Notes: generated by a model not told the origin, from the sequence alone. A stretch of 64,000 nt of DNA from IMGVR_UViG_3300044638_006750:124001-188000; one strand, 5' to 3'; positions 7,914 through 55,405 are shown, counted from the first letter of the stretch. Made by a program: numbers and translations.

Positions 7914-8382
7914 ATGTTATATTTTCCATAATACCTATTGGTTTATTATTCCAGCAATTACTATAAACATTATATATGTATTGATTTTTAGCTATAATAG
8001 ACAAATTTTGGGTAGGTCCATACAAATGGTTAAGATATAGATAGTTTGCTTCAGTGTTTAGCCACGGAATATCTTTTGCATAAAAATATATCTTATTTAT
8101 ATTTGTAAAGCCCTTTGATATAATAAGAGATTCTGTGTCGGATATCCATAACTTACCATTAAAAAATTTGCACTGAGATATTGGTAAGACTGGCACGTTT
8201 AATCTGTGGGTTATAGAGTTCGTATTGTATGCAAAACACACATACTGGTTAGAATGATCATATTGAATAGCAGTATATATTGTATCATATATGTTTTGAT
8301 ACTCTTGATTATTATTTACAACAAACCCAAAATCACTAATTATTGACATAAAATTCCTTTTTGATATAATCGTTAATATCAA
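7876..8382 (-). CDS. Hypothetical protein (possibly a diverged glycosyltransferase-like fragment)
   Basis: Tightly packed ORF in the operon; no clear motif. Confidence 0.5.
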   Translation of the reverse strand: MILTIISKRNFMSIISDFGFVVNNNQEYQNIYDTIYTAIQYDHSNQYVCFAYNTNSITHRLNVPVLPISQCKFFNGKLWISDTESLIISKGFTNINKIYFYAKDIPWLNTEANYLYLNHLYGPTQNLSIIAKNQYIYNVYSNCWNNKPIGIMENITYENFKKTILDTE

Positions 8383-8971
8383 TAATATCGCTATCCATGT
8401 TATCTACAGCAACCATAGTATCCATGTCGATATATGATGCACCACATAGGAGACTTTCATTTTTATATATATGATTTTTACCAATAATAGATTTATAGGA
8501 TGCTAATATAAAAGCCTTTTGATGTTCTAGTAATGTTCCTAAATTATATGGATTATTGATTTTGCTATTATTAAACATATGTATATCACAATCACTGCGC
8601 ATGGTGAGATCAACAATGTTGGATGGAAGCTCCTCAATATTATCTAGTAATATAGCTCTTTTATTATTTCTGGAGATACTATATTTTTTAAAAATCTCTC
8701 TATTAATTACATGCTTGAAATTATTTAAATCATCTATAATAAATAAATCTTTCATTGCATGGTATTGATTCATAAATGTTTTGATAGCAAAATGTTCTAT
8801 GTCAGACTTAGCTATACAAATTTTATATGGTTTAATAATATCGTATGCTTTAAAAATTTCTTCTACATTTAGAATATAAAAATCCACATATTCGGCATGA
8901 TTTGGTATAGATATTTTAATACTATCTAGTAATCTACTGTTGGTAGTAGAAATAATAATTTTGTGTTTCAT
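8336..8971 (-). CDS. Hypothetical protein
   Basis: 211-aa ORF in a coupled operon. Confidence 0.55.
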   Translation of the reverse strand: MKHKIIISTTNSRLLDSIKISIPNHAEYVDFYILNVEEIFKAYDIIKPYKICIAKSDIEHFAIKTFMNQYHAMKDLFIIDDLNNFKHVINREIFKKYSISRNNKRAILLDNIEELPSNIVDLTMRSDCDIHMFNNSKINNPYNLGTLLEHQKAFILASYKSIIGKNHIYKNESLLCGASYIDMDTMVAVDNMDSDIIDINDYIKKEFYVNN

Positions 8972-8973
8972 TG

Positions 8974-9651
8974 TTATATAAATAATTTTGCTTTATTAAT
9001 ATCTTTAATATTATTAATTTTTGTAATTTGTGATTTAGGAATATAGATATTGTTAAATACTATAGATCTATCCAGTAGTTTATTTACCATCTCAAATAGA
9101 AATAATGTCTTTAATTCATGAGGTAATATGGTTTGTTTAACTAGATCCAAAGCACTGTCTGTTAGATATAAACATTCTGACCATAAAAAGGGTAAATCAT
9201 AGAATAAATATTCTACCTTATCAGGATTTAAACATCCAATGTTGAAATTATTTTTTTTACCCTTGATCAGAAATAGCGTATTCTGTGACGGCTTAAGCAT
9301 TTTACTAAAATTAAATCTGGTAATAATACCATTATTAATAAAAATAGCTCCCTTATTAGATTCTCTTTGTTCAATATAGGACACAATAGATGCTATTTGA
9401 CTACTAGTATCGTACTGTTTATTTTCTAAGAAATGTATATTTTTTTTATGGGCGGATGAAGATATGGTTTTTTTGATTCGTTCTGATTCAAAACCGGTTA
9501 GTAGGTAGATGGGATTGTGCTTATATATGGTTCTAATTAGTTCTATTTGATGTTCTATTAGAGTATATCCCCGTATATTAATTAAAGACTTGGGGCCAAA
9601 TGACTTCATGCCCTTAGTAATTTCAGGAATAATAAAAACTATATCAATCAT
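8974..9651 (-). CDS. Sugar-phosphate nucleotidyltransferase-like protein (NTP_transferase fold, diverged)
   Basis: KGMKSFGPKSLINIRGYTLIEHQI..LLTGFE matches the GxGxRM...PKxL N-terminal signature in degenerate form. Confidence 0.7.
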   Translation of the reverse strand: MIDIVFIIPEITKGMKSFGPKSLINIRGYTLIEHQIELIRTIYKHNPIYLLTGFESERIKKTISSSAHKKNIHFLENKQYDTSSQIASIVSYIEQRESNKGAIFINNGIITRFNFSKMLKPSQNTLFLIKGKKNNFNIGCLNPDKVEYLFYDLPFLWSECLYLTDSALDLVKQTILPHELKTLFLFEMVNKLLDRSIVFNNIYIPKSQITKINNIKDINKAKLFI

Positions 9652-10376
9652 TTATATATTAAATATGGACAGCTTGGATTATCTTGAAAAAATAGTGCGG
9701 TTTCATAAAAGAATTTGGGCTTATCAGATCCAAGAATCTTATATGTATCATATGTCATAAATAATCCATCCAGATTTGTGAGACTAGATAGTCTTATTGC
9801 ATATTTTTGATCAATCACCATATCTATGTGTGCGTTGTTCATTATGTCTTCTAAATTATCCAAGGTATCCTGATTAGATACATACAAAAAACCTTTAGAG
9901 TCATATTTATCCAATAATACATCAACACATGAAATAATAGAAATTGGCTCATCTATATGAGGTAATATTTTACTAGCTTTCCATGGCACCGACAAATGTT
10001 TCTCAAAGGATGCCACCATATCGCCTTCTATTGTTTTACCAAAACACACGACATTTTTCGGCTTAAAAGAAGCATTATTAATACTGTCTATAATAGTTTG
10101 AACAGATTTATTTAAAGTATCAAAATTTAAGACTAGAGTATAATGTATCTGGTTGTTTCGTAATATAATTTCTTTGATTTGTTCTTTATTAATGGACTGT
10201 TGATTTTTTTCTAGTGTTTCACTACCAAAAGCATAAGAACAACTATATGGATGAATAGTATGATTAATACTGTCGATTATGATACTATCATTAGTAATAC
10301 TTTCCGGTATGCCAAACTCACACCACTCATCTTCTGAATAAAAAATACATTTTTTGCAGTATGTTGTGTCCATCAA
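9648..10376 (-). CDS. Hypothetical protein, N-terminal Cys motif
   Basis: CKKC..C..C; ATGA-type coupling with neighbours. Confidence 0.55.
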   Translation of the reverse strand: MMDTTYCKKCIFYSEDEWCEFGIPESITNDSIIIDSINHTIHPYSCSYAFGSETLEKNQQSINKEQIKEIILRNNQIHYTLVLNFDTLNKSVQTIIDSINNASFKPKNVVCFGKTIEGDMVASFEKHLSVPWKASKILPHIDEPISIISCVDVLLDKYDSKGFLYVSNQDTLDNLEDIMNNAHIDMVIDQKYAIRLSSLTNLDGLFMTYDTYKILGSDKPKFFYETALFFQDNPSCPYLIYK

Positions 10377-10756
10377 TACTGGATCCTCTTTAGGGTAAAA
10401 ATAGTTTTAAAGTTATCTTCTACCATTTTATATAATATAATTTTTGGCTCTAAAGAAATGATATAATTAATAATATTCATAGGTTCTGTATGATGTTTGA
10501 TATCTCTCAAAAGAGATAATCCTGCATCTACCTCTATAGAATTTTTGGACAGAGCATCTATAATTTTACTATAGTCTAATAGGCTAATTACCAGCTCCCC
10601 TTCAATTCTTATTTTTTGCAGAATGGAATTTATGGTCGGTATTTTTTTATCCTCTGGTACTTTATCTAATCCGTTATATCGGATGGCGATTTGTGAATAG
10701 TCTGGTAATTGCTGAATTTCTGCAAAGTTTTCTTGATCTAAACATACTAAATTCAT
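10373..10756 (-). CDS. Hypothetical protein, weakly class I methyltransferase-like
   Basis: TINSILQKIRIEGELVISLLD resembles the ..RVLKPGG.L.I..PD motif. Confidence 0.4.
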   Translation of the reverse strand: MNLVCLDQENFAEIQQLPDYSQIAIRYNGLDKVPEDKKIPTINSILQKIRIEGELVISLLDYSKIIDALSKNSIEVDAGLSLLRDIKHHTEPMNIINYIISLEPKIILYKMVEDNFKTIFTLKRIQY

Positions 10757-11508
10757 AGTAGCATCGCTTTCTTGAGTTGGTTTGCAAAGGTTTTAAAATC
10801 ATAATTTAAGCTAGTATTATTACTGTTCATTATATTTTTAGAATTAATAGTTTTTTGTTCTATTATATCTTTCATAAAAATTGCACTAGATCCAGATGAA
10901 ATGGCAACATAACTATCCAGAATATTTGAACATATTATTAAAGCGTATGTAGAAAAGTATTCAACTAATTTATTATAATCCATGTATTTGCTAAAGTCAA
11001 TCAATACTTCTATCTTGGACACCCCACCCATATCATATATAATATCTGTTAGTATTTTATCATGATTTTTATCTAATATAAGAATTTTATCATTTTTAAT
11101 TTTTGAGGTATTTTTGGTTTTTGGTATAGCAATTCTCAAATTTTTCTCAAAGATTTTATTGTTATTTGGATGTAAATTTATAACATTAAAAAGAGACAAT
11201 CTTTGCTTAATTAAAAATATGTCTTCTTTTTTCAGATAAGACATGTCATCGTGAATAAATAGTGTAAATTGTTTGATTCCGCTATTCGCATAATTATTTA
11301 CTAAATGAGGATTATGTATAAATACTCTGTAGTCATTTAATATAACATGTTTAGCCGTAAAATACTGTAGATCGCTTATTTGATTAGCTCTAATAATTTT
11401 ATCAGATAATTCAGACTCCATCAATAAATCAAAACAAGAATTATTGTTGATATATTGTATCAACGAATTATTTTCTGATCCATAAATTTTGTTATATGTA
11501 TTACTCAT
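10753..11508 (-). CDS. Hypothetical protein
   Basis: 251-aa coupled ORF. Confidence 0.55.
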   Translation of the reverse strand: MSNTYNKIYGSENNSLIQYINNNSCFDLLMESELSDKIIRANQISDLQYFTAKHVILNDYRVFIHNPHLVNNYANSGIKQFTLFIHDDMSYLKKEDIFLIKQRLSLFNVINLHPNNNKIFEKNLRIAIPKTKNTSKIKNDKILILDKNHDKILTDIIYDMGGVSKIEVLIDFSKYMDYNKLVEYFSTYALIICSNILDSYVAISSGSSAIFMKDIIEQKTINSKNIMNSNNTSLNYDFKTFANQLKKAMLL

Positions 11509-12379
11509 AAAGACTACCGAGATCCAGTTTAGTTGACATAGTATAATGAATATTTGTGGCTTTATCTATACAGGACAGTTTTTTAAGCAATGAATCGTGG
11601 TCTATATGGTCATAGAAATTATTGCATTTTTGGAACTTAAATATTCGTTTGTTAGTAGATATAGTCTCAATATTATATCTCTTATCTAGGTTATATTTAC
11701 CTATAATTCTTTTATGGCTTTGTAGAGCATAGTAATACTCGATATCGGATATAAAAACAGCATTGATTTGCAATAAACAATCTATGCTATTAATAACAGA
11801 AATACGATAGTCGTCTGTAATGTTTCCACTAATACTGAGAATAACTTTTGTACTGCTTGGTGCGATTCCTATTTTTTTATGTAGATTTTCTATAAAGTCT
11901 AGAACCTTTTGTTCTTCTGTTGACTCTATGGCAAGAACTAGTATAGTATTTCTGAATCTTGCAGCTTCATAAAACACACAAACTAGATCTTCGATTATAT
12001 GGATATCTTGATTAAAGTTTAGAATAGCTCCAAATTTATAGTAATTATCAAATACGCGATTCAACTTAATTTTGTTTTGATTATATGAAACAATAAAATC
12101 TAGTTTTAGACTATCTATATGATTTTGATTCAATATATTTTGAGCTACGTCATTAGTGACACAAACTTTTGAAACAAGACTATATGCTTTAGGAAAATCT
12201 ATATATTCTATATATGGAATTCTAGGAAAAACAATATTTTTTGTATATTTTCTAGATATAAAAAGTTTATCATATAAAGTAAACTGCAAAATAGTTTTTT
12301 GAGAAGGATTAAAATGCTCTGCAATAGTCTCAGCTAACTTAGATTGTGATTCTTGTATTAATATAACATTATTATTCAT
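11501..12379 (-). CDS. Hypothetical protein, degenerate GT-B-like
   Basis: YKFGAILNF..INSIDCLLQI pattern resembles a GT4 C-terminal domain. Confidence 0.45.
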   Translation of the reverse strand: MNNNVILIQESQSKLAETIAEHFNPSQKTILQFTLYDKLFISRKYTKNIVFPRIPYIEYIDFPKAYSLVSKVCVTNDVAQNILNQNHIDSLKLDFIVSYNQNKIKLNRVFDNYYKFGAILNFNQDIHIIEDLVCVFYEAARFRNTILVLAIESTEEQKVLDFIENLHKKIGIAPSSTKVILSISGNITDDYRISVINSIDCLLQINAVFISDIEYYYALQSHKRIIGKYNLDKRYNIETISTNKRIFKFQKCNNFYDHIDHDSLLKKLSCIDKATNIHYTMSTKLDLGSLYE

Positions 12380-12770: not shown

Positions 12771-14066
12771 TTACCATTTAAATATAATATGATTCCAGCT
12801 ATAATGATCTATACAGTTATTTCTTGTTGTAATTCTATTTCTATACTTAATGGGATAAGGAATATAAAGAAAATTATGCATAATTTCTACAAGACTATTA
12901 TTGTCTGGATAGGCCCTATAAGCCTGAGTTTCTAGCTCTTTAAATAATGTTGCGATTTGTACAGGGGTCGCGTTTAATTTTGAGACTATATCCTCCATGG
13001 CGCTATATGGGATCGTTGTGACAGGCACACCGCAAGCAGCAGCCTCTACTTGAGGCATACCGAATCCTTCGCATATTGAGTATTGTATGTACATATCAAA
13101 AGCATTATAAATATTTACCATCTGATCCAAGGTTACTCCGGATGTAACTGATGGCAAACTTGCGCTTTTATTTTTGCAATATATACAGTTTCTATGGGAT
13201 CCTGAATATACATCAGCAAATACCTTTTTGCAATTTTGACACAAATATGTCAACAATGTTCTGTTTAACATTCTGTTATCTTTAAGAAGGGTAGGTATAT
13301 CCCACCCCAAATAGTCGGGGTATCCGGTATGGAGATACAAGTACACCTTATCTGCAAAAGGAGAGTTCTCAGATGCGAGTTTGTCTATTAGCTGTCTAGT
13401 TGCTTTGATCAGCTCTGGGATTAGTTTCCTTTTTTGATTTCTCATCACAGAACCAAACACTATTTTATTTTCATCAATTTGTAGAGCTTTTTTAGCTATG
13501 CTACTATCTATTAGGCTATATGTGGTAGCATCTATCCCTGGTGATGCTGTATCTATATGATTTATATGTCCATTAGTTTGTAACTTTAAAACTTGTTCTG
13601 CCCAATCAGAATATGTAAAGATAGAATCAGCACCTAAATAAGTATCTAGCCAAGCTTCCTGCTGAGGATAAGAATCGACTGTTGGCATTACCATCCAGTG
13701 AAAACATTTTCTTAGAGGAGAGTATGCTTGATAGCAATTCATCCAATAGTCTCTTATATCTATAACCACATCTGGTTCAAAATCTATTAATGTTTTTTCA
13801 AACCTCCATCTACCAAAAGCATTTTCAGGACTAGCTGAATATTCTCCGAATCTTGGGTCTGTATTTTTAACACAGTTAGCATAATATCTCCATGTAATAT
13901 CTCGATCCCTAGGATCGTTTACCATACCATAGCAAGCCAGCTCGGCAACATGAAACGCCGGGTTCTTACTAAGTCTAGCAAGTAGTTCCTTGCCATACAC
14001 AGCATATCCAGTGCTCAAAAAACTGGCTTCATTGCACAATAAAATTTTTAATGGTTGTTGTGTCAT
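12771..14066 (-). CDS. GT4 (GT-B) glycosyltransferase; likely start ATG at 14066 rather than 14108
   Basis: KILLCNEASFLSTGYAVYG, VMRNQKRK, CEGFGMPQVEAAACGVPV; the longer start runs through a terminator hairpin. Confidence 0.85.
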   Translation of the reverse strand: MTQQPLKILLCNEASFLSTGYAVYGKELLARLSKNPAFHVAELACYGMVNDPRDRDITWRYYANCVKNTDPRFGEYSASPENAFGRWRFEKTLIDFEPDVVIDIRDYWMNCYQAYSPLRKCFHWMVMPTVDSYPQQEAWLDTYLGADSIFTYSDWAEQVLKLQTNGHINHIDTASPGIDATTYSLIDSSIAKKALQIDENKIVFGSVMRNQKRKLIPELIKATRQLIDKLASENSPFADKVYLYLHTGYPDYLGWDIPTLLKDNRMLNRTLLTYLCQNCKKVFADVYSGSHRNCIYCKNKSASLPSVTSGVTLDQMVNIYNAFDMYIQYSICEGFGMPQVEAAACGVPVTTIPYSAMEDIVSKLNATPVQIATLFKELETQAYRAYPDNNSLVEIMHNFLYIPYPIKYRNRITTRNNCIDHYSWNHIIFKW

Positions 14067-14072
14067 TATACG

Positions 14073-14100
14073 AAAAAGGGCTATGTTATTAGCATAGCCC
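14073..14100 (-). terminator. Intrinsic terminator downstream of ssb
   Basis: Minus strand GGGCTATG-CTAATAA-CATAGCCC-TTTTT: 8-bp perfect stem followed by a U tract. Confidence 0.8.
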
Positions 14101-14129
14101 TGTTTCATTCCACTTCTTATGACGATATC

Positions 14130-14501
14130 TTAGAATGCGACCGTTTCTTCCTTAGATTCTTCCTTGCGTGAAGATAGCTTAGTAATCTTAGAAAAGTTAT
14201 TGACACGAATCTTGAGAGAAGAATGCTTAACTCCATCCTTTTCCCAAGAATCATTTCTAATAGAACCTTCCACAAGAACTAGATCGCCCTTCTTGAAGGA
14301 CTTTCCGATAATCTCAGCACCCGTATCCCATGCTTCACACGGAATGAAAGATGTGATCTTATCCTTACTTCCATTAGCCTTGGTATATTCTCTAGAAGTA
14401 GCTACTGTAAAGTTAACTACTGAAGTTTCCTTACCATTACTGCTAATTGATCTAAGCTCAGGATCTCTAGCTAAATTTCCACGAATAATAACAATATTCA
14501 T
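14130..14501 (-). CDS. ssb: Single-stranded DNA-binding protein
   Basis: MNIVIIRGNLARDPELR..FTVATSREY..CEAWD..GDLVLVEGSI; C-terminal tail ending in AF. Confidence 0.95.
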   Translation of the reverse strand: MNIVIIRGNLARDPELRSISSNGKETSVVNFTVATSREYTKANGSKDKITSFIPCEAWDTGAEIIGKSFKKGDLVLVEGSIRNDSWEKDGVKHSSLKIRVNNFSKITKLSSRKEESKEETVAF

Positions 14502-14548
14502 CGTTTTCGACTCCTTGTTTAAAAACCAAAATGTCCCAACACTGGTAT

Positions 14549-14576
14549 ATTATAAACACCGTCCCACGCAAGTCAA
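14549..14576 (-). promoter_or_regulatory. Sigma70-like promoter for ssb
   Basis: TTGACT-N16-TATAAT on the minus strand, ~48 nt upstream of the ATG. Confidence 0.7.
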
Positions 14577-16189
14577 GCCATCGGCAGATAACATTTTTCA
14601 ACGATTAGGTCGTTCTTCTTCGATGACTTCGTACCCTTAAAAATAAGAATATTACCTTCAAATAATTGGTTACGATATAAAGATAGCTGTTCGGTAAAGA
14701 ATATCAATGAATCTACATATCCTGTACTGTCAGAGATGCTTACAAAAGCCATCTCATTACCTTTATTCTTTCCGTTCTTAATTTTAATCACATTCATTCC
14801 ATCTATTTCTCCAGCCATAATAATAGATTTTCTTTGAGAGTCCTTGAACTCTTTACATGTTGTATTAGTCATACTAATATCATAAGAATCTACTTTAGAA
14901 TATGTAATATTAATGCCCAATAAAGCATTCTCATTATCGCATACCCACTCTATTTTATCTTCTAGTGAATATGGAGGTTTAATTAGAGATGTTATCAAGC
15001 CCAACAAAATATTCCTACGATTCTGTGTAATCTTTGGTTTTTTTACCAAAATATTCATCAGTTGAACAATATTAAATTGTTTGATATCTAGAGATAATAC
15101 ATATTCTATTTCTTTGGCTGTTAACTCGCTAGCTATATCATAATCAAATAACATCTCAGTTCTACTCTTCTTAATATAGCTAAAGGCTCCACTACAAATC
15201 ATAGCTTTTGCGGCGGTAGAGTTTATTTTCAATAGTAGCTTAAATAATATTTCTACCCACGACATATTGTATACATCTAAATTTTTAGATATGTCTACAA
15301 TCTTGTTATAAACAGAATCACCAACACCTTTTATGTCTGTTAGACCAAAATAAATCTTATTATGATGTATCACAAAAAACTGATTAAGTAATCTATAGTC
15401 TGGAACGCAAATTTCTATATCCATATCAGTTGCGTTTTTAACTAGTTCTTTAATTTCTTGTTGAGGATCTATTTTATCTTTGGCATACTTAAGGTAGGAC
15501 GCAAAGAATATCTTGGGGAAGTGGGCTTTGCTGAAAGCTGATAAATATGCATTTATAGCATAGCTAACTGCATGAGATTTATTAAAAGAGTATCTTTGAC
15601 TTTTTTCAATCCAGCTAAAAATCTGCTCTGCTTCGCTTTCATTAACTAAACCAGTAGCTTTGCACCCTTGAATAAAAATAATCTTAAGTTTTGCCATTTC
15701 TTCTGGCTTTTTCTTGCCAATGGCTTTTCTTAACTGGTCTGCTTCCTGTAAATCGAAACCAGCTATTTTTTGAGCTATTTCCATCGCCTGTTCTTGATAA
15801 ACCATTTCTCCAAAAGTGGTTTTGAGAATAGGCTCTAGTGCAGGATTAAAGTAATCTATAGACTCTTCGCCATTCTTTTTGTCTATAAAATGATTACTAA
15901 CCGTTTTCCCATCCCTAATAGCTTCCAGACACCCAGGTCGCATAATACTAATGAGGGCGGAAAGTTCTTCAATATTAGACGGTTTAAGCTTTCTCGCCAT
16001 GCTTTGTCCAAGACGAGACTCTAACTGAAAACAACCCTTTGTGTTTCCAGAAGAAAGCATGTCCCATGTTCTTTTACAGTCAAAATTTATAGAGTTCATA
16101 TCTATAGAAAAATCTATCTTTGGCATAGCGCCTTCGGATTTCTCTATGATTGGAAATCTACAACCACAATCAAAAGTATAATATTCCAT
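14573..16189 (-). CDS. dnaE: DNA polymerase III alpha (DnaE), C-terminal half (fingers, HhH, OB)
   Basis: GCFQLES, LISIMRPG, GEMVYQEQAM, ADQLRKAIGKKK, YSFNKSHAVSY, GLTDIKGVG, C-terminal OB fold. Confidence 0.92.
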   Translation of the reverse strand: MEYYTFDCGCRFPIIEKSEGAMPKIDFSIDMNSINFDCKRTWDMLSSGNTKGCFQLESRLGQSMARKLKPSNIEELSALISIMRPGCLEAIRDGKTVSNHFIDKKNGEESIDYFNPALEPILKTTFGEMVYQEQAMEIAQKIAGFDLQEADQLRKAIGKKKPEEMAKLKIIFIQGCKATGLVNESEAEQIFSWIEKSQRYSFNKSHAVSYAINAYLSAFSKAHFPKIFFASYLKYAKDKIDPQQEIKELVKNATDMDIEICVPDYRLLNQFFVIHHNKIYFGLTDIKGVGDSVYNKIVDISKNLDVYNMSWVEILFKLLLKINSTAAKAMICSGAFSYIKKSRTEMLFDYDIASELTAKEIEYVLSLDIKQFNIVQLMNILVKKPKITQNRRNILLGLITSLIKPPYSLEDKIEWVCDNENALLGINITYSKVDSYDISMTNTTCKEFKDSQRKSIIMAGEIDGMNVIKIKNGKNKGNEMAFVSISDSTGYVDSLIFFTEQLSLYRNQLFEGNILIFKGTKSSKKNDLIVEKCYLPMA

Positions 16190-16190
16190 C

Positions 16191-16895
16191 CTAAGTCATC
16201 AATGGTTTAGAAAATGAGTCCTTGAATTTAACTTTACTTGCCAGTTTTCTGTGAAGTTTCAAAAATCTAATCAAAATATCTGCTGTATCTTTTACGTCTT
16301 TAAGTGCATCGTGAGCACCATCTTTGCTAATACCTAAATAATCTCTAAGATTATCTAATGTATAGCTCTTTAGTTCTTTTGATCCTTCGAACCAATAAAA
16401 AACTAAATTCATAATATCTATTACATCTCTCGGATAAAATAAAGACGAATTACCTTCTTTATTAACATTCTTATATTTTACGCTTAGTTTTTGAACTATA
16501 GGCAAATCAAACCTATTAATATTATAGCCAGCCGCTATGGGAGCAGTAAAGCACGATTTTTTCTCTGAACGAATATGATACATATCTAAGTAGGATGTAA
16601 ACATTTTCCATCCAGCATCCTGCTTCGGATATGATTTCCATTGTGAGAGGATATCGTCTTTTGATGATCCTCTCACCTTGGCATGAAAATCCAAAACGTC
16701 TGAGTCTTCGTAGGAATAGCTGCTATTTTGTTCCAAAGCCTCTGGCTTGAGATTTATATTAAACTCGGAGTCTGGTATGACTTCCAGTTTAAATGGATCT
16801 ACAATAATAGCGGCTATTTGAACAGGACTACAAACATTGGGGTCTTTACCGTCAGTTTCTAAATCGAACACACAAATTTTTTGATTATTAGCCAT
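16191..16895 (-). CDS. DEDDh 3'-5' exonuclease (DnaQ/epsilon-like)
   Basis: VFDLETDG, AGYNINRFD, AHDALKD. Confidence 0.9.
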   Translation of the reverse strand: MANNQKICVFDLETDGKDPNVCSPVQIAAIIVDPFKLEVIPDSEFNINLKPEALEQNSSYSYEDSDVLDFHAKVRGSSKDDILSQWKSYPKQDAGWKMFTSYLDMYHIRSEKKSCFTAPIAAGYNINRFDLPIVQKLSVKYKNVNKEGNSSLFYPRDVIDIMNLVFYWFEGSKELKSYTLDNLRDYLGISKDGAHDALKDVKDTADILIRFLKLHRKLASKVKFKDSFSKPLMT

Positions 16896-17073
16896 TAATT
16901 ACCACTGCTGTTCCTGGGGCAAAAAAAGTTTTGTTAGCCGCATTGGACACGTCCTCTGCATTAATAGATTTGCAACAGCTAACCTTAATCGTATCAATTT
17001 TTCTATACTGAGTGTCAGAACCATGAACTTTAAATTCTTGTCCAACATTTAGCTCAGAAAATAGTTTATTCAT
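16888..17073 (-). CDS. Small hypothetical protein between the polymerase halves
   Basis: GGAGG SD then ATG at 17073; overlaps both neighbours. Confidence 0.7.
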   Translation of the reverse strand: MNKLFSELNVGQEFKVHGSDTQYRKIDTIKVSCCKSINAEDVSNAANKTFFAPGTAVVING

Positions 17074-18943
17074 AACTACCTCCATTTTTCAAAAGTGTAC
17101 TTACAGTCATAACCTTATCTAACATTGCAACGCCTAAGATATCGAACTTGATAATACCTAAAGTTTCTAAATCTTGCATTTCCATGCCAGCTATTTGTTG
17201 CTTATTTTTGGTATCATAAACCATAGGACATATATTCCCTAGTTTTTGATCAGAAATAACAATGCCAGCCGCATGTTTGGATTGGTTAACTTTAGTTCCT
17301 TCTAGACGAATGGCTTGCTCAAAACGCATCGCTAGGGGACCAGACAGCACACCATCCTCATTAATATAACACCAATTCTTGAGTTTGTCAACATTATTTT
17401 CTAGAGACCACTGTATAATCGAGGCTTCTCCATATTCTTCTTTCATTTCTTGTAGTTCGTCTGCAATCTTAGCCTCGTCGGGTATATTTTTTGTGATAGT
17501 GTTCATTTCATCAAAAGTTATATCTCCGTATACTCTTAAAACATCCTTTAAAGCCCCTCGACCCTTTAGGGTGTTAAAAGTAATCATTTGGGACACATTT
17601 TCTGTACCATACCTATTTTTGATATAACCAATAACATCTTCTCTCTTATTAATTGGTACGTCAACGTCAATATCTGGCATAGAGATTCTATCCTTAGTAT
17701 TTCTTCCTGCATTATAAAATCTTTCAAAGATTAGATTATATTTTAGTGGATCAATACTAGTAATACCAATCAAATAGGAAACCAGACATCCGGCAGCTGA
17801 ACCTCGACCGGGACCGGGCAACCAGCCACTATCTCGCACAAAATTGACGATATCAGACACTATTAAAAAGTAGCTAGACAGACCAGCCCCCTGTAAAACA
17901 GACAGTTCGTATTTGATCCTTTCTGCATACATGTCTTGTTGTTCTTTGCTAATATTATTGCTAATTTTTTCTCTCCACCCATTTCTACACAACTGTCTCA
18001 GAAATTCATCAGGATCATTATTGATGCATTCGAATGGAGGCAGCATTGGTTTATGAGAGATATCGTAATCTTCACACATACTATCTATAAGGTTGGTATT
18101 ATCAACTTCTTCTTGTGTATGAATTTCATTCATCTCTTCTGGAGACAGAATATAATAATTATCCGATACAAAAAATGTTGACATTGGTACAGACTCATTA
18201 TTTACTATCTTTCGATTAATGTCTGTAAATGTTGTTTTTAGATTATTACAAAGAAGTATTCTCTGATCTATCGCGTCTTCTTTTTCTGAATAGTGAGCAT
18301 CGGGTGTGCAGATCACTTTGGTATTAGTCAGTTTACCCAATTCACGAATACAGTCTGTCAATATTTTTTGAGCGGGGTTATGGTTTTGATCCATAAGTTG
18401 TGCTTCAAGAAAAAAATTGTCATTGCCAAATGCATTCTTGAGTATGCCTATTTTTTCTATGCCTATATTTTTCCAGTCTGGAGAAATCTTATCATCTTCT
18501 AAAATATGGTTAGCAATATATGATCCCAGATGACCACAGAAACCAATCATATTTCCATCTAAAAATTCTGACAACTTATCTATACTAAGTCTTGGCTTAC
18601 GATAGAAGTAGTCTTCTCTATTTGATTCGGATATAATTCGTATTAATTTATGCCAACCGGCCAAATTTTTTGCTAAAACTAAGAAATGACTAGGAGATTC
18701 TTCTTTATTTTTTATAGAAGGATCCGAGTCTGAAATATATAGTTCGCATCCCAATATGGGTTTGATACCAGACTTTTTTAAGGTGGTATGGAACTGAACT
18801 GCTCCGGCTATGTTGCCATGATCAGTTAATGCACAAGATCCTACCCCTATTTTTTTACATCTTTCTGATATTTGTGATGGTTTACTTAATCCATCCAATA
18901 AACTATAGTGAGAATGAACGTGCAGTGGAATATAATTTTTCAT
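17066..18943 (-). CDS. dnaE: DNA polymerase III alpha (DnaE), N-terminal half (PHP + palm/thumb)
   Basis: HVHSHYSLLDG, TDHGN, DAHY; GPGRGSAAGCLVSY, MPDIDVD, IKFDILG (all three catalytic Asp). Confidence 0.95.
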   Translation of the reverse strand: MKNYIPLHVHSHYSLLDGLSKPSQISERCKKIGVGSCALTDHGNIAGAVQFHTTLKKSGIKPILGCELYISDSDPSIKNKEESPSHFLVLAKNLAGWHKLIRIISESNREDYFYRKPRLSIDKLSEFLDGNMIGFCGHLGSYIANHILEDDKISPDWKNIGIEKIGILKNAFGNDNFFLEAQLMDQNHNPAQKILTDCIRELGKLTNTKVICTPDAHYSEKEDAIDQRILLCNNLKTTFTDINRKIVNNESVPMSTFFVSDNYYILSPEEMNEIHTQEEVDNTNLIDSMCEDYDISHKPMLPPFECINNDPDEFLRQLCRNGWREKISNNISKEQQDMYAERIKYELSVLQGAGLSSYFLIVSDIVNFVRDSGWLPGPGRGSAAGCLVSYLIGITSIDPLKYNLIFERFYNAGRNTKDRISMPDIDVDVPINKREDVIGYIKNRYGTENVSQMITFNTLKGRGALKDVLRVYGDITFDEMNTITKNIPDEAKIADELQEMKEEYGEASIIQWSLENNVDKLKNWCYINEDGVLSGPLAMRFEQAIRLEGTKVNQSKHAAGIVISDQKLGNICPMVYDTKNKQQIAGMEMQDLETLGIIKFDILGVAMLDKVMTVSTLLKNGGSYE

Positions 18944-19980
18944 TCAACGCTTCCTGGTGCCTTGTACTTTCCAACAGTATACCCTGGAACTGTGTATTCG
19001 TCAACTACAGCATCTATGCCTTTTAGCTCGATATCGTGCTTAACCTGTTCACACTTTGTCATAAAGGTATCTTTTTGACACAACTGATTATCTCTATATT
19101 CGATGATTGGCAAAACATTAGAGTCTTGAAAAGTGCTTTTCCCATAATGACAAAGCTTACTACACATCCAGCTCTTATTCAATTTAGGTCTTTTTGTTTT
19201 CTTTATAATTTCAAATTTTTCTCTTAGCATTGATTCTGTTTTGGGCATATCGGATTTATCAAAATGAACGCTAAAAGCTCCACCGTCGTTAATAAAAAAT
19301 ATAGTAACCATTACATGTTCAATATCTGGATATAGATTTTGCACAGCATAGTGGTATATCCTGAGTTGAGGATCATCTTCTAATTTTTCTTGTGTTTTTT
19401 CTTGTCCCGTGGCCCAGTTAAGTCTGCGACCTGTTTTCCAGTCTACAATTTCCAAAGTATTATCATTAACTTTTGTAATTAAGTCTATTGTTCCCTTTAT
19501 TCCTAAATTACCCTCAAGCACACCTTGAGATGTATTATACTTATATTTGGCCCAAGGTTTTTGTATTACTATATCAAAATGTTGTTCTGGACATACAATT
19601 TCTCTATTCCTGGGATCAAACATCCCATTATTATATAAGATTGCTTTATCAACCCATGTTCTACAGTCTTTGCGATCCTTGTCTGTCCATTTATGATGAT
19701 GAAACCTACTAGTGTAATAATCATATACTTGATTACTAATATCATCTAAATTATAATTAGAAATATCTACATTTCCAATAGTATCGTCTTCAAATACTTG
19801 GTTTTTATTCTGCTGATTTTGTTTGATCATAGCAAGTATTTCTAGTACCTTATGTACTATTGTACCTTTATCAGCTTTTTGATTACTTGGTCCACGATAA
19901 CCCAAAACATACTCAAAAAAATATTGCTGCTCACACATCGAATGAGCATTATAGGATGAGCTTCGAAAATATGTGATTAT
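18940..19980 (-). CDS. PD-(D/E)XK RecB/Cas4-like exonuclease; probable ATA/ATT start at 19980/19983
   Basis: KGTIVHKVLE, KGTIDLI, IVDWKTG, QLRIY, C-terminal Cys; the family N-terminal motif RSSSY....C...Y lies upstream of ATG 19938. Confidence 0.85.
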   Translation of the reverse strand: MITYFRSSSYNAHSMCEQQYFFEYVLGYRGPSNQKADKGTIVHKVLEILAMIKQNQQNKNQVFEDDTIGNVDISNYNLDDISNQVYDYYTSRFHHHKWTDKDRKDCRTWVDKAILYNNGMFDPRNREIVCPEQHFDIVIQKPWAKYKYNTSQGVLEGNLGIKGTIDLITKVNDNTLEIVDWKTGRRLNWATGQEKTQEKLEDDPQLRIYHYAVQNLYPDIEHVMVTIFFINDGGAFSVHFDKSDMPKTESMLREKFEIIKKTKRPKLNKSWMCSKLCHYGKSTFQDSNVLPIIEYRDNQLCQKDTFMTKCEQVKHDIELKGIDAVVDEYTVPGYTVGKYKAPGSVE

Positions 19981-47607: not shown

Positions 47608-48182
47608 CTATTTTTTTGATTTTGTTTATTATATGTATAGACAAAGACATCATAGTTGCCCCAGATATCTTCAATCAGATCAGAGATAAAATTCCAATTG
47701 CCTCCAGCAATACCAGACCCGAATTTTGGAGTATGTATTTCTATTTTTTGGTTTTCTGATTGTGCTTGAAAATTCTTGATGAATTGACCAACAAGAGTCA
47801 TTGATTTAACTAGTGCCTGATAATTTAAACATCTTCTATGATTTTTATCTGGTAATCCGTTTTGAGCTATCATATTAGCAAACATTAGTTTATAGCCATA
47901 TTTATTTTTAACCGGAATCTCTATAATTTGTGCGTGTCCAAAATTATTTCTCATAAAGGTTTTACCAAGCATGTGATAATTTTCTTTTACGATAGGGTAG
48001 TGATTAGATACGGCAGCGGCAAAACCTCCGCCAAACACATCTATATTATTACATACATGAGGTACTATGACCGAACTTCCAAGTTTTTCAGAAGATAGTC
48101 TTTTTATTATTCTCTCAAAAATATCGTCATTACTTACTGTGTAAAAAGACCTATGAGATGCGTTGTGGTATTTTGTTTGCAT
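47604..48182 (-). CDS. Macro domain (ADP-ribose-binding/hydrolase) protein
   Basis: PHVCNN..FGGGFAAAV, FANMIAQ, PKFGSGIAGGNW. Confidence 0.85.
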   Translation of the reverse strand: MQTKYHNASHRSFYTVSNDDIFERIIKRLSSEKLGSSVIVPHVCNNIDVFGGGFAAAVSNHYPIVKENYHMLGKTFMRNNFGHAQIIEIPVKNKYGYKLMFANMIAQNGLPDKNHRRCLNYQALVKSMTLVGQFIKNFQAQSENQKIEIHTPKFGSGIAGGNWNFISDLIEDIWGNYDVFVYTYNKQNQKNS

Positions 48183-48203
48183 AGATTACTCCTCTTTTGA
48201 CTT

Positions 48204-48232
48204 ATAGTAGCTCCCAACCTACATACAAGCAA
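48204..48232 (-). promoter_or_regulatory. Sigma70-like promoter for the macro-domain gene
   Basis: TTGCTT-N17-TACTAT followed by a GAGGAG SD. Confidence 0.65.
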
Positions 48233-48243
48233 ACCATCAGCAT

Positions 48244-49077
48244 CTAAGACAAAATCTGTTCTATCAGATCGTCAGATATCGCCATTTCTTTATCGCTCGG
48301 GGAGTAGTATTTAGATTCTTCGTTAATCGTGGTATTATCAAAAATCCTATCTATCCACGTAAAACCATACTGATCCTTGTCATATTGAAGAACTGGAGTA
48401 GAATTATGTTCTAAAAAATTTTGATTAGATATTTTTTTCAAAAAATCAAATGATACTTTTTTTTCTAGCCTTTCTGCAATATTTTTAAACATAGCCATAC
48501 TTAATATTCTACAAGGGTGGTTATGAGTAGCAAATAATTTTGTTTTTAAAAAATTTTGATTTATAAAATTACTAACATTTTCATAACTGTGTTTAATTAA
48601 TGATTTATCCAATCTATGTTTAGATTGAATGAAACTATTTCTTGTATCTTCAATAGATTTTTTATATATATGAACAATATCGTATGCATATAATTCCAGC
48701 TCTAAGTTACTCATTCTAATTTCTTTTAGGTCTGAAATGTCAAATGTTTCAAAAAAGTTATTTGGAATATTTTTGTCTGTATTTAAAATTTGATAATTTT
48801 TTATAGTTTCTGTAATAATTAAATCTGTTTTCTGTAAAATGTTACGAATATCAGAGATCGGAAAAAGATAATTTTTCTCTGCATTCCATTTCTGTCCCCA
48901 AAACGGAGTATAAATACAATAAATGTTAAACTCTGGAAAAAGTAAACTTAAATAATACATTATTGGAGTTGTTCTACAGCTTCCCAAAAATAAAATATTT
49001 CTAGGTCCACACCCTTTATAAATCATGAAATTATTGCTAGCATTTAATTCACTAAGTTTCGCAGCGAGTATTATCAT
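48244..49077 (-). CDS. WcbI-like polysaccharide biosynthesis protein
   Basis: ILFLGSC, KLFATHNHP. Confidence 0.55.
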   Translation of the reverse strand: MIILAAKLSELNASNNFMIYKGCGPRNILFLGSCRTTPIMYYLSLLFPEFNIYCIYTPFWGQKWNAEKNYLFPISDIRNILQKTDLIITETIKNYQILNTDKNIPNNFFETFDISDLKEIRMSNLELELYAYDIVHIYKKSIEDTRNSFIQSKHRLDKSLIKHSYENVSNFINQNFLKTKLFATHNHPCRILSMAMFKNIAERLEKKVSFDFLKKISNQNFLEHNSTPVLQYDKDQYGFTWIDRIFDNTTINEESKYYSPSDKEMAISDDLIEQILS

Positions 49078-49721
49078 TGAATTAAATTTAAAATTTCTTT
49101 ATATTTGTTTGTTTTTAAAGTATTACAACTTGATGATGAGAAGTGTATTAATTTCCCTATTTTTGGATAATTAGCTACAAGATTTAAACTTTTATAATCT
49201 GTTTTACGGTTAGATAACATAATCATATCTGATGTATGTTCTTTATTATTTATAAGATGAATGTCTATTGGTTTTAGAACCATAAATGATTTCAACATAT
49301 TAAAATAATCTTCAGATCTACCAGACACTACACAAGGGACATGTCCCTGATAAATAGTTAATTCTGTGAAATCAAAAAAATTTATATCTTCTTGAAATGT
49401 ATTATTTATTACATCATAATCAATCATTACTCCTCCTCCTATGTTAGCCATTGCTAACCATCTCATATAACAATGATAGTCGTAGGACGAAGGATTGATG
49501 CTTGGGAATGTTTTTATTATTGTTGAATACTCATTATATAAAGGATGAGACAAAGCGTCTTTTTCGGATATTATCTTCAGTTCCCATCCATGATTTAGCC
49601 AAGATTTTGCACATAGCTCTATTAAAGACTCTTGAGAATATTCTTTTGCAGGCCGATGTTCGATCTCGGGTACAACTTCATAATATGTATAGATAATATT
49701 ATTTTTTGTGCAGTATTGCAT
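49074..49721 (-). CDS. Putative DxD glycosyltransferase
   Basis: KSW..HGWE, CYMRWLAM..GG.MIDYDV. Confidence 0.55.
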   Translation of the reverse strand: MQYCTKNNIIYTYYEVVPEIEHRPAKEYSQESLIELCAKSWLNHGWELKIISEKDALSHPLYNEYSTIIKTFPSINPSSYDYHCYMRWLAMANIGGGVMIDYDVINNTFQEDINFFDFTELTIYQGHVPCVVSGRSEDYFNMLKSFMVLKPIDIHLINNKEHTSDMIMLSNRKTDYKSLNLVANYPKIGKLIHFSSSSCNTLKTNKYKEILNLIQ

Positions 49722-50949
49722 AGTTATATTTTTCTTTTAGTTCTGTGATCGGCATATTTCTATTCTCTTCACTATTTAAACTTAAATTAACAATCAATGT
49801 TGTATACACATATTGTTTTTTTATATAGTTCCATAATATTTTATTGTGTTTAGATGATTCTCTATCAAAATGATAATGCATTACTAATTTAAGCAAATAG
49901 TCGTATGGCATGTCTGGACTATGATATTTAATATACTCTGGCATTACAGACTTACAAAACTGCATATATTCCTGAAATAAAGGATTTCCAGTAGCATATA
50001 TAGAAGTTCCTCCATTAATATGGCTATTTAATAAGGACGAATATGATTCATTACTAACGCCATCATACTGAGAACCAGAAATTAAAAAAGGTTGGGATGA
50101 ACAGTATTTAACCAGTCTATCTAACCACTTATCAGATAGATAACAGTCGCACTCCAACAATAAGCTAGAGTTGTATTTTCTTAACAAATCCATAACTGCA
50201 AAGAAAACATAGTTTGGACCCGATTTATATCCGTATAGAGGGATTACATTTTCATCACAATCAGAATTTTTTCCCCAATAAATATCTAAGTCTTGAGGGA
50301 TATCTAAATAAATAATCTCTAAATGTTTAAATTTGTTTTTTAAATTATTGATACCATTATTGTTTTCATAAAATTGTTGATCATATTTTTTATTAGCTAT
50401 AATTATTAAATCTATATTTTTTGACAAATCGGCATTGGTGTTTTTATCTATCTGGTCTAAGAAATTAAGATATGAGTTATCGGTAATTTCTTGTTCACCT
50501 GTTGCCAGTAAACAAATACATTCTAGGTTATTTTCATAGTGTTTAATGCTATCAAGCGAACAATACTGAGAGATATCTTTAAATAATCTAGTATCTTCTT
50601 TATTGACTTCAAAATATGACAATATATGATCATTTGTAATTAAAGTTTTATCTATTTCATTAAAATCTTTTTTTAAGTTATTAATAATTTGTTTAATATT
50701 ATGATATTTTTTTTCATATAATTGAATTAGAGTATAATAATACCATTCTGAAAATTCAATATTCTTGCTTTCCAACACTAAATTAATTTTTTCATCAATA
50801 TTATCTATCAGTTCTGAGAGTTTGTAGTATGGCCAAGACTGATTGGGGTTTAAATTAATAGCTTTATATAATAGTTCTTTAGCTATTTCTGGTTGATTAT
50901 TTTTAATACACAGCATTGCAGCTTTAGCGTATTCTTCCCAATTATTCAT
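49699..50949 (-). CDS. TPR + putative glycosyltransferase-like domain protein
   Basis: N-terminal TPR (LYKAINLNP), LLECDC. Confidence 0.5.
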   Translation of the reverse strand: MNNWEEYAKAAMLCIKNNQPEIAKELLYKAINLNPNQSWPYYKLSELIDNIDEKINLVLESKNIEFSEWYYYTLIQLYEKKYHNIKQIINNLKKDFNEIDKTLITNDHILSYFEVNKEDTRLFKDISQYCSLDSIKHYENNLECICLLATGEQEITDNSYLNFLDQIDKNTNADLSKNIDLIIIANKKYDQQFYENNNGINNLKNKFKHLEIIYLDIPQDLDIYWGKNSDCDENVIPLYGYKSGPNYVFFAVMDLLRKYNSSLLLECDCYLSDKWLDRLVKYCSSQPFLISGSQYDGVSNESYSSLLNSHINGGTSIYATGNPLFQEYMQFCKSVMPEYIKYHSPDMPYDYLLKLVMHYHFDRESSKHNKILWNYIKKQYVYTTLIVNLSLNSEENRNMPITELKEKYNYAILHKK

Positions 50950-53104: not shown

Positions 53105-53784
53105 ATGATTAAATCAGTATTGTAAAAATTTTGCAATAATTGAATTTCGTATTTAATTTTATTACATATTATGTTTTTTACTTTGTCTCCTATTATAGAA
53201 TCAGAATCAACAGGAGACCTATTCATATGGTGATTAGTAATATGTAGTTGAAACGGATTTGAGTCATTAAAAATTTCACAAAGTTTTTGATTTTCTACCT
53301 GAAAAATAAAGTTATATTTTTTAAGTTCTTCTATAGCAATCTCATATTTTTCTTTTAAAGATTTTTCTTTATATTTCACATTAGTTAAATATTCTATAGT
53401 CATATTGCCAAATCTGTCTAAGTAATTATTAAGCAAATTTTCTGAAAGGTTGTCTATGTGTTGACCATAAAAATAATGAATGTGGCTTATCACTCGTTTA
53501 ACAGGATCTCTGATAGTCAGTATTCTGTATGTGTCTTCTATAGAAAGCTTAAAAATATCTTCTATATAATAGCTGGGACTATGGTCTATGAACATCAGAG
53601 TATCAGAGTGAATTGTGTCTATTAAATGAGGTTGTTCATATAAACACATATTTCCATGAGTAAATTGCGAGATATATGCTGGGGCTTGTTGAAAATGTTC
53701 GTTGTTCTTATAGCCTTCATAAAATCCTCTTTTAAGACTGGACCCTCCACATCTGGGAATATGATTTAAAACTAAGTATTTCAT
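53101..53784 (-). CDS. PAPS-dependent sulfotransferase (Sulfotransfer_2-like)
   Basis: HIPRCGGSS (5'-PSB), IRDPVKRVIS (3'-PB). Confidence 0.8.
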   Translation of the reverse strand: MKYLVLNHIPRCGGSSLKRGFYEGYKNNEHFQQAPAYISQFTHGNMCLYEQPHLIDTIHSDTLMFIDHSPSYYIEDIFKLSIEDTYRILTIRDPVKRVISHIHYFYGQHIDNLSENLLNNYLDRFGNMTIEYLTNVKYKEKSLKEKYEIAIEELKKYNFIFQVENQKLCEIFNDSNPFQLHITNHHMNRSPVDSDSIIGDKVKNIICNKIKYEIQLLQNFYNTDLII

Positions 53785-53788
53785 ATGT

Positions 53789-54541
53789 TTAGTTACAAAT
53801 TAGATTATTAATTAATAGTTTAGATAAAGGAACATCTTTATTGCAGACATACGAGTCTGAGCAATGATGTATGACACAATTGGGATCAATTAGCGAAAAA
53901 CTATAGTGTAATAAATTCCTAGAATAATATCCTTGAGGAATATTATAGTAAAGCAATCCTTCAGCCGATGATTCTAATATACCCTCATGTTTGCCTGTTC
54001 CAGCATATTCTTTTGAAGCTGGACATGAAAGATATTCTTTCATCATTATTTTATCCATAATATACATTGCTTGATGATTTTCTGGTAAATTAATATAATT
54101 TGATTTGTATTTTTTAATATCTCTAATGGAGTAAGTCCTGGTTATATCTGTTAAATACCATCTGTTTTGCAAATGCTCTACCCTGATGAATCCGGGAAAA
54201 AATCTTTTATCATCTATTTCTTGTCTATGATATAACCAATAATCTATATTATTCTGATCGATAACTACATCGTCTTCTGTATATATAAAATGTGTGTATG
54301 ATGAGTCATCATAATATTTTTGCATTACTGGAATATGTTTCCACGGTAAATGGAACGGGTGTTCTAGCTCTCCAACATAATAATATTCGGTATTTGGATT
54401 ATTGCATATAACAGTTATATCTATATTATATGACGTATTTTGTAATTTATTTATCACACGTTCTAAAAATTTTTTTCTTTCTTCTCTGTAATAGAAAGTT
54501 ATTACACAGGCTATTTTATCCGCCATACCAGTATCTTCCAT
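53789..54541 (-). CDS. Putative GT-A glycosyltransferase
   Basis: FIYTEDD motif. Confidence 0.5.
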   Translation of the reverse strand: MEDTGMADKIACVITFYYREERKKFLERVINKLQNTSYNIDITVICNNPNTEYYYVGELEHPFHLPWKHIPVMQKYYDDSSYTHFIYTEDDVVIDQNNIDYWLYHRQEIDDKRFFPGFIRVEHLQNRWYLTDITRTYSIRDIKKYKSNYINLPENHQAMYIMDKIMMKEYLSCPASKEYAGTGKHEGILESSAEGLLYYNIPQGYYSRNLLHYSFSLIDPNCVIHHCSDSYVCNKDVPLSKLLINNLICN

Positions 54542-55403: not shown

Positions 55404-55405
55404 AA

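Follow-up and report, generated by a model that had tools for sequence, protein, structure and literature searches.

A family C DNA polymerase gene in two intein-free halves, with a DEDDh exonuclease gene between them, in an uncultivated freshwater jumbo phage

The DNA analysed here is a stretch of 64,000 nucleotides comprising bases 124001-188000 of the 232,683-bp IMG/VR virus record IMGVR_UViG_3300044638_006750 (about 33% G+C). We refer to the whole stretch as the window and count coordinates from its first base. The subject of this work is the window's gene for DnaE, the catalytic (α) subunit of a family C DNA polymerase, which is divided into an N-half (αN) and a C-half (αC). The sequencing runs containing this region are freshwater and lake metagenomes, and the source is an uncultivated freshwater jumbo phage. 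It has no cultured representative. Thus, a megablast search of the region against 50,697 phage records gave zero matches, the closest cultured DnaE is 33% identical and the large terminase has a best cultured identity of just 24%, to Bacillus phages. The standard genetic code sufficed to read the genes and an alternative code was not needed. The genes of the polymerase block are as follows.

17066..18943, minus strand: DnaE N-half (αN), 625 amino acids; Pfam PHP and DNA_pol3_alpha, alignment to solved α structures
16888..17085 (65 amino acids), more likely 16888..17073 (61 amino acids), minus strand: small conserved open reading frame (ORF); conserved position, purifying selection
16191..16895, minus strand: DnaQ/ε-like DEDDh 3'-5' exonuclease, 234 amino acids; Pfam RNase_T and phrog_192
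14573..16189, minus strand: DnaE C-half (αC), 538 amino acids; Pfam DNA_pol3_finger and HHH_6, weak OB

The gene junctions were read directly. The N-half stop codon, TAA, occupies positions 17068-17066. A gap of 876 nt separates the N-half from the C-half, and the two ORFs are in different frames. The exonuclease ATG falls inside ATGGCTAA, giving an 8-nt overlap with the stop of the small ORF, and the exonuclease TAG is 1 nt from the C-half ATG. The small ORF has two possible starts. A GGAGG sequence at 17083-17079 lies 5 nt ahead of the second ATG, at 17073. Hence, a 61 amino acid product starting from ATG 17073 is more likely. The small protein also starts at the second methionine in relatives and in two databases. 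With this start the overlap between the small ORF and the N-half is 8 nt, as opposed to 20 nt with ATG 17085. A terminator scan found a sole convincing terminator-like hairpin in the region, at 14077-14101, after the downstream SSB gene. The four polymerase-block genes appear to form a single translationally coupled unit within a replication module. An earlier note, made from the DNA alone, had placed the block at 14573-18943. It had the N-half ending shortly after the motif KFDILG with all three catalytic aspartates, a fingers/OB half in a separate gene ~880 bp downstream, and a small ORF and a DEDDh exonuclease between them, all overlapping or 1 nt apart. The coordinates proved exact and this anatomy stands. 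The presence of the small ORF was upheld, and its more likely start is 17073, with an N-half overlap of 8 nt instead of 20.

All the domains of the polymerase are present, spread over two ORFs instead of one polypeptide. The N-half matches PHP (PF02811, E 5e-34) and DNA_pol3_alpha (PF07733, E 3e-74), and αN comprises the PHP, palm and thumb domains. The C-half matches DNA_pol3_finger (PF17657, E 7e-49) and HHH_6 (PF14579, E 7e-7), and αC comprises the fingers, an HhH (β-binding-like) region and an OB fold. The match to the OB fold is weak (E 0.0017, below the Pfam cut-off), and the alignment to E. coli α continues to residue 1054. The C-terminal τ-binding domain is absent from the C-half, which ends just after the OB fold. 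The N-half aligns with the Taq, M. tuberculosis and E. coli α subunits up to about E. coli residue 564, and the C-half aligns with E. coli α residues 584-1054 (of 1160). Hence, the break is in the loop between the third catalytic aspartate motif and the fingers, equivalent to about residues 565-583 of E. coli α. This is ~20 residues after the third catalytic aspartate, in KFDILG, after which the N-half has a tail of 21 amino acids. The C-half begins with an N-terminal extension of ~26 amino acids that includes a CGC motif.

The active site residues are intact. Palm aspartates D424 and D426 (in PDIDVD) and D601 (in KFDILG) are invariant in 29 relatives and align to Taq D463, D465 and D618. The nine PHP ligand positions (H8, H10, D17, H42, E67, H86, H138, D215 and H217) are conserved in the same 29 relatives and read HHDHEHHDH, with H138 aligning to a Cys of Taq. 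The signature HHDHEH[C/H]DH has been used to denote an 'active' PHP domain in bacterial enzymes (PMC12926913), and the N-half fits it. Hence, two candidate proofreading sites, in the PHP domain and the DEDDh exonuclease, are a fair reading of the sequence. Two such sites are unusual in bacteria with a DnaE1-only system (PMC12926913).

Across the 232.7-kb genome the N-half is the sole match to PF07733, and Pfam gave zero matches to PolA or PolB. Hence, the split DnaE is the only polymerase found in the phage. Pfam also gave zero matches to a β-clamp or a clamp loader (δ'/τ) across the genome. The surrounding replication module contains genes for RecA, DnaB, primase, a dNMP kinase, a nuclease, the polymerase genes and SSB, with a class II ribonucleotide reductase (RNR) further on.

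The same layout is widespread. A scan of IMG/VR identified 60 related loci, of which about 50 were long enough to read through; all have the order N-half, small ORF, exonuclease, C-half. These ~50 contigs span 56-100% N-half identity, and one relative with the same order is a genome of 199,884 bp with direct terminal repeats. Because the order recurs in about 50 independent contigs, the four-gene layout is not a chance pattern. We also searched 1.84 billion cluster representatives in full with HMMER, and the figures given here are from the 150 nearest 50%-identity clusters (38-66% identity). Proteins of fewer than 700 amino acids, with the match ending at the protein C-terminus, account for 126 of the 150 (112 of them are 560-700 amino acids). 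C-half sequence is present in 6 of the 150, and most other long representatives are intein-bearing N-halves. With the C-half as query, a word search gave 3770 stand-alone relatives at E ≤ 1e-5. Among the best 120 of these, almost all are 536-543 amino acids long (one has 516), and their contigs are up to 248 kb. One N-half-only DnaE (P0264, 762 amino acids) ends in a circularly permuted YpsA (SLOG) domain, fused precisely at the point where a C-half would start.

All four genes are under purifying selection. In pairwise comparisons with relatives, the ratio of non-synonymous to synonymous substitution rates (dN/dS), given where dS was calculable and with dS saturated, was 0.04-0.06 for αN, αC and the exonuclease, and the small ORF gave 0.10-0.15. 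The junctions were compared with lake-metagenome contigs from three independent runs (X4, X5 and X6). There were 0 differences across all three junctions. In X6, records 25, 26 and 27 bridge the C-half/exonuclease, exonuclease/small ORF and small ORF/N-half junctions, respectively. This support comes from assembled contigs, not raw reads. Misassembly is excluded because contigs from independent runs bridge the junctions and the layout is conserved.

A complex of αN (residues 1-625) and αC (residues 1-370) was predicted using custom alignments of each half. The interaction prediction score from aligned errors (ipSAE) was 0.78 in all three runs, and the best of three controls scored 0.00. In a calibration, 58 of 80 solved complexes attained the 0.78 mark, as did 2 of 110 mismatched pairs. 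The runs share at least 93% of contacts and the partner had a predicted local distance difference test score (pLDDT) of 85. In the model, the confident interface is between αN residues 375-414 plus the C-terminal helix (606-624) and αC residues 12-32 plus 203-238. Such packing would be expected if the two pieces of the cut chain came together again in the contiguous DnaE fold. The model supports binding of the two halves to each other.

The exonuclease matches Pfam RNase_T (E 1e-11) and, as its best PHROG, phrog_192, 'DNA polymerase exonuclease subunit' (E 6e-23). Residues D11, E13, D130, H195 and D200 of the DEDDh signature are invariant in 25 relatives, motifs Exo I (DxE), Exo II (D) and Exo III (Hx4D) are all present, and the protein aligns to a PolC exonuclease domain. 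It is the sole RNase_T match in this genome and its counterpart is the sole match in each of two complete relatives.

All close relatives encode the small protein (57-65 amino acids) in the interval from N-half to exonuclease, and its residues F9, F18, C37, C38 and V61 are invariant. AlphaFold2 predicts a five-strand SH3-like barrel (pLDDT 89.5). Fold searches with Foldseek and VIA-align returned only generic SH3, KOW, Tudor and EF-P-domain-I matches (best E 0.09, Z 5.3). Pfam, PHROGs, the ESM Atlas and a profile word search gave the protein no name, and its 187 sequence relatives are all 'hypothetical' phage proteins. One weak fold match is to the B. subtilis SPβ prophage protein YorP (template modelling score about 0.5). 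SPβ also encodes a DnaE-like polymerase, YorL, near YorP, which may be a coincidence. The small protein's CC pair (C37 and C38, window 16972-16977) and the CGC motif at the C-half N-terminus (amino acids 1-10, window 16165-16189), which is accompanied by near-invariant C38 and C53, may form a metal site. A zinc site shared between the subunits through the two motifs would not be general, since several relatives keep CC without CGC.

In every split relative examined, the exonuclease gene lies between the halves. These are the close IMG/VR loci and five distant contexts of 39-50% N-half identity, in which the other cargo varies. The cargo between the halves in distant relatives consists of UDG, a dual-specificity phosphatase (DSPc), a TnpB-like gene, Endonuclease_NS and an IS630-type helix-turn-helix (HTH) protein. 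In closer relatives it includes an RCC1-repeat protein, an FkbM methyltransferase, a DUF1559 protein and ThyX. The positions of the TnpB-like gene (Cas12f1-like_TNB, L074:8329-9693) and the IS630-type HTH protein gene (L077:7872-8516) are both between DnaE halves, and the DnaE cut appears to be a place where mobile DNA inserts. In one relative, 3.6 kb of cargo between the exonuclease and the C-half (L028:10740-14383) includes genes for the FkbM methyltransferase, ThyX and the DUF1559 protein, the last with an N-terminal methylation motif. The DUF1559 family is greatly expanded in Planctomycetota, and this cargo may hint at a Planctomycetota host for that relative.

We consider it probable that a split, non-covalent αN/αC family C polymerase, most likely with an ε-like subunit, is the sole DNA polymerase of this phage. 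Insertion of a block of genes at the boundary between the palm and fingers domains would have split the DnaE gene. Its two chains would be made from one tightly coupled operon and would reassemble non-covalently into a working polymerase, with neither protein nor RNA splicing. According to the model, the αN C-terminal helix and the palm segment GPGRGSAAG would pack on the αC N-terminal extension and the helices of the FNKSH region, recreating the intramolecular interface of contiguous DnaE. The DEDDh exonuclease would join the two chains as an ε-like proofreader, and the intact PHP site may provide a second 3'-5' nuclease or have a metal-dependent structural role. Gene order and co-occurrence are the basis for placing the other two proteins in the complex. 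On these grounds, the exonuclease is most likely the ε-like proofreading subunit of the split core and the small SH3-like protein is probably an accessory subunit.

Several points weigh against this interpretation. The score of the predicted complex may reflect the model's memory of contiguous DnaE structures, and the input alignments were shallow. The putative activity of the PHP domain is deduced from a sequence signature. No clamp-binding motif was convincing on inspection of the conserved C-half columns, and Pfam found no clamp. Metatranscriptome runs contain next to none of the region's sampled words. Plainly unrelated cargo is tolerated between the halves, including UDG, the phosphatase, TnpB, the methyltransferase and ThyX. 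Hence, position alone is no proof that either the exonuclease or the small protein is a subunit. Finally, the small-protein profile has no match in distant split relatives, nor in Rossellomorea phage phiT1, whose split DnaE is described below.

The last two points would be explained if αN and αC formed a heterodimer only, and the exonuclease and small ORF were passengers in a permissive site, with no architectural link to the split. The two proteins could then work on their own, for instance in repair or in breaking down host DNA, or attach at another place, as E. coli ε attaches to PHP. Such a site is consistent with the full range of variable, unrelated genes found in the interval in relatives, and with the absence of the small protein from distant split relatives. 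Conversely, the exonuclease is the one constant occupant of the interval, is the sole DnaQ-type gene in three complete genomes and is translationally coupled to both neighbours. PHROGs places it with polymerase exonuclease subunits, and it is absent from beside DnaE in the two relatives with a fused gene and the same synteny (P0142, 1133 amino acids; P0185, 1102 amino acids; n=2). We therefore regard independent passengers as unlikely.

A single polypeptide could also be produced if the halves were joined by an unrecognised mechanism, such as an atypical short-half split intein, an ORF-carrying intron or ribosomal bypassing. Atypical split inteins with very short N-parts exist, and relatives carry split inteins at two other sites of this gene. 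Cyanobacterial and metagenomic fractured DnaE proteins are indeed trans-spliced (PMC2677866). Evidence at the locus points the other way. Pfam gave zero Hint/intein matches in any of the four proteins. The two intervening genes have no match to HNH, GIY-YIG, LAGLIDADG or Vsr homing endonuclease families, and Rfam, at a permissive E ≤ 1 over 14000-19500, matched neither an intron nor any other RNA family. The 876-nt interval is fully coding and consists of two conserved genes that are themselves under purifying selection and whose start and stop codons overlap. The N-half tail (21 amino acids) and the C-half head (~26 extra amino acids) are too short to be intein halves and lack terminal intein motifs. 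In position, the tail corresponds to the stretch that follows the KFDxLG motif in native DnaE, and the head has no terminal Asn followed by Cys, Ser or Thr. In the two fused relatives, a short ordinary linker joins the same two segments. We consider joining of the halves very improbable.

Inteins at other sites of the same genes in relatives L050, L052 and L025 served as a positive control. These split inteins are plainly recognisable and, hence, an intein at the palm/fingers cut would have been seen. In the N-half, a split intein lies between GPGRG and SAAG (L050:7637-10001 and L052:8001-10319); its N-part starts CF(I/V)P and its C-part ends GVHN. In the C-half, a split intein lies between FNK and SH (L025:10738-13682 and L050:10879-13824), a site close to the cyanobacterial DnaE intein insertion point. 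About 1 kb separates the intein halves here; this DNA reads in other frames and may encode a free-standing endonuclease. P0134 and P0151 are also broken by an intein half at the FNKSH site. Contiguous inteins are common (P0139, P0141, P0143, P0146, P0147, P0156, P0159, P0164, P0165, P0223, P0246 and P0274). Intein-bearing N-half representatives are about 1000-1400 amino acids long and have at least two insertion sites, at ~amino acid 64 (PHP) and ~amino acids 381-393 (palm). P0159 has two inteins and a LAGLIDADG domain.

A third alternative, in which the split gene is a remnant that is decaying or dispensable, or a product of misassembly, and host Pol III replicates the phage, would fit the failure of Pfam to find a phage clamp or clamp loader and the near absence of the region from the metatranscriptome runs found, but is hardly credible and already strongly disfavoured given dN/dS of 0.04-0.15 over saturated dS, catalytic residues that are all invariant, a layout conserved across >100 clusters at 50% identity, identical junctions in contigs of three independent runs, and the position of the genes inside a full replication module of DnaB, primase, SSB, RecA and RNR.

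The preferred reading of a split, unspliced polymerase is close to that of the earlier note, which had proposed intein-free junctions, intact PHP metal ligands, possibly two proofreading sites and a non-covalent heteromeric family C replicase. It had also named checks, among them multimer prediction, conservation of the split point in related phages and read support across the junctions. The junctions are free of inteins and introns by every search above, and all nine PHP ligand positions fit the 'active' signature. For the αN and αC part of the multimer, the two-chain model passed its controls (ipSAE 0.78 against 0.00) and so supports the proposed heteromer. The split point recurs in the ~50 IMG/VR contigs and in the 126 N-half-sized clusters of the 150 nearest, and the contigs of independent runs are identical across all three junctions.

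We used phylogenetic trees of the N-half to place the fused forms. A FastTree analysis included 134 N-half regions; of 157 rows, 23 were excluded for coverage below 80%, most of them intein-bearing or partial proteins. A chosen 53-row subset was analysed with IQ-TREE and the approximately unbiased (AU) test. Both trees were rooted with Firmicute-phage DnaEs. In both, the fused forms are two well-supported small clades nested among N-half-only lineages. The AU test disfavours a tree in which the N-half-only rows are all together (p = 0.037). The simplest reading, which is no more than suggestive, is that the gene broke once, long ago, in connection with the arrival of the exonuclease block, and that the halves were later re-fused on two occasions.

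Broken DnaE genes are also found in cultured phages. In Rossellomorea phage phiT1 (L063; gp20/gp19/gp18), the cut is in the same loop after the KFDxLG motif and a small ORF lies between the halves. This ORF encodes 49 amino acids with no visible likeness to the small protein (there is no CC motif), and there is no exonuclease between the halves. On the N-half tree, phiT1 is in the outgroup with fused Firmicute-phage DnaEs. This placement suggests that the phiT1 gene underwent an independent fission. Hence, phiT1 shares the split loop with the window and differs in lacking the exonuclease, in its unlike ORF and in its outgroup position. In Bacillus phage vB_BauM_KLEB27-3 (L065; gp166/HNH/gp164), the cut is about 35 amino acids further on and an HNH gene lies between the pieces. 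Thus, DnaE tolerates an intein-free break there too, and the case differs from ours in the cut site and the HNH endonuclease. In Bacillus phage Edson (L064), breaks are at ~N-half amino acid 432 and ~C-half amino acids 168-203, and the pieces are annotated as hypothetical proteins.

The arrangement is not categorically new, since phages with split polymerases, and genes in pieces that lack inteins, have been described before. Metagenomic 'fractured' DnaE genes and the split DnaE of cyanobacteria are trans-spliced by split inteins (Dassa et al. 2009, PMC2677866). As in those cases, the family C catalytic subunit of this phage is spread over two genes, and relatives L025, L050, L052, P0134 and P0151 carry exactly such fractured-type split-intein breaks, one of them at the FNKSH motif. 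Unlike cyanobacterial DnaE, neither end here has an intein half, hence there is no trans-splicing. The break is at the palm/fingers loop and not in the fingers. Furthermore, the genes are 876 nt apart in one operon, instead of at separate loci or around a homing endonuclease gene.

T4-related phages have intein-free genes in pieces, such as a split gp43 or nrdA. The family B polymerase of PhiKZ is likewise an intein-free split, its DNAP-N and DNAP-C forming a 1:1 complex (PMC13648687). In these phages, as here, an essential replication enzyme is made as two polypeptides, split at a domain boundary and conserved within a lineage. Unlike PhiKZ, the enzyme described here belongs to family C, and its complex is predicted from sequence and a model, whereas that of PhiKZ has been shown. 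Unlike other genes in pieces, the constant intervening gene encodes a cognate-type proofreading exonuclease and not a homing endonuclease. Group 2.2 (T4-like) jumbo phages encode a minimal Pol III α split in two proteins, without PHP or accessory domains (Iyer et al. 2021, PMC7824862). Those halves are encoded far apart and accompany a family B polymerase (PMC7824862). By contrast, the PHP, HhH and OB domains are present here, the halves are adjacent and there is no PolB match.

The gene set also resembles the E. coli Pol III core (α-ε-θ), in which a family C polymerase and a DEDDh proofreader have a third tiny protein alongside, and PolC, in which a DnaQ domain inserted in PHP combines polymerase and proofreader. 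The differences from the E. coli core are that α is in two chains and that the PHP ligands are intact here and not in E. coli. θ is a helical protein, whereas the small protein is predicted to be an SH3-like β barrel. Unlike in the DnaE1 holoenzyme, the aligned C-half has no τ-binding domain, and Pfam found no clamp or clamp loader across the genome. In full-text literature searches, a full-length DnaE cut at the palm/fingers hinge with a nested proofreading exonuclease gene was undescribed, which is no proof of absence.

The genes that flank the polymerase block are as follows.

18940..19938, minus strand: PD-(D/E)XK (Cas4-like) nuclease gene; Pfam PDDEXK_1, syntenic in distant relatives
14130..14501, minus strand: SSB gene, downstream of the C-half; Pfam SSB, syntenic in relatives

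The TGA of the PD-(D/E)XK nuclease gene overlaps the N-half ATG (ATGA). Hence, the nuclease is probably the upstream member of the translationally coupled unit. Directly downstream of SSB is a group 1 glycosyltransferase gene (window 12771-14108), which is syntenic in distant relatives and might modify DNA or the surface. From ~6 kb to 60 kb of the window, nearly all genes are on the minus strand and the cumulative GC skew falls steadily. Window positions 8001-12000 and 48001-56000 are 27-28% G+C, against 32-39% elsewhere, and may be cargo or islands. No tRNA or tmRNA genes were found in window 1-64000.

A more specific proposal, which we advance tentatively and think improbable, is that gene order mirrors the enzyme. 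The exonuclease, with the SH3-like CC protein in this subclade, would dock at or bridge the severed palm/fingers junction. If true, the phage would have a three- or four-subunit family C core with its proofreader located at the chain cut. This would be the trans equivalent of a domain insertion, like that of the PolC exonuclease in PHP, at a new site. The fission would in that case be a consequence of acquiring the exonuclease, and the fused relatives would be products of secondary re-fusion with exonuclease loss. Were the PHP site still active beside the exonuclease, there would be two proofreaders.

Family C enzymes are the bacterial replicases. They have been regarded as fixed in domain connectivity, except for known intein breaks that are mended by splicing. 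Here, a large and widespread phage clade (>100 clusters at 50% identity, in metagenomes of lakes and other aquatic habitats) has DnaE permanently in two chains. This would be a natural experiment in which fingers closure and palm catalysis are coupled across a non-covalent interface, and it offers a ready-made DnaE split point for engineering. Sister phages carry split and contiguous inteins at at least three sites in the same genes and, hence, the clade is a compact system for comparing spliced with unspliced gene breakage. Nesting of the exonuclease in the cut, and its absence beside the fused relatives, ties gene fission to proofreader gain, a link that is rarely visible. The main value of the finding is thus a natural, widespread and unspliced two-chain family C polymerase in which that link can be seen.

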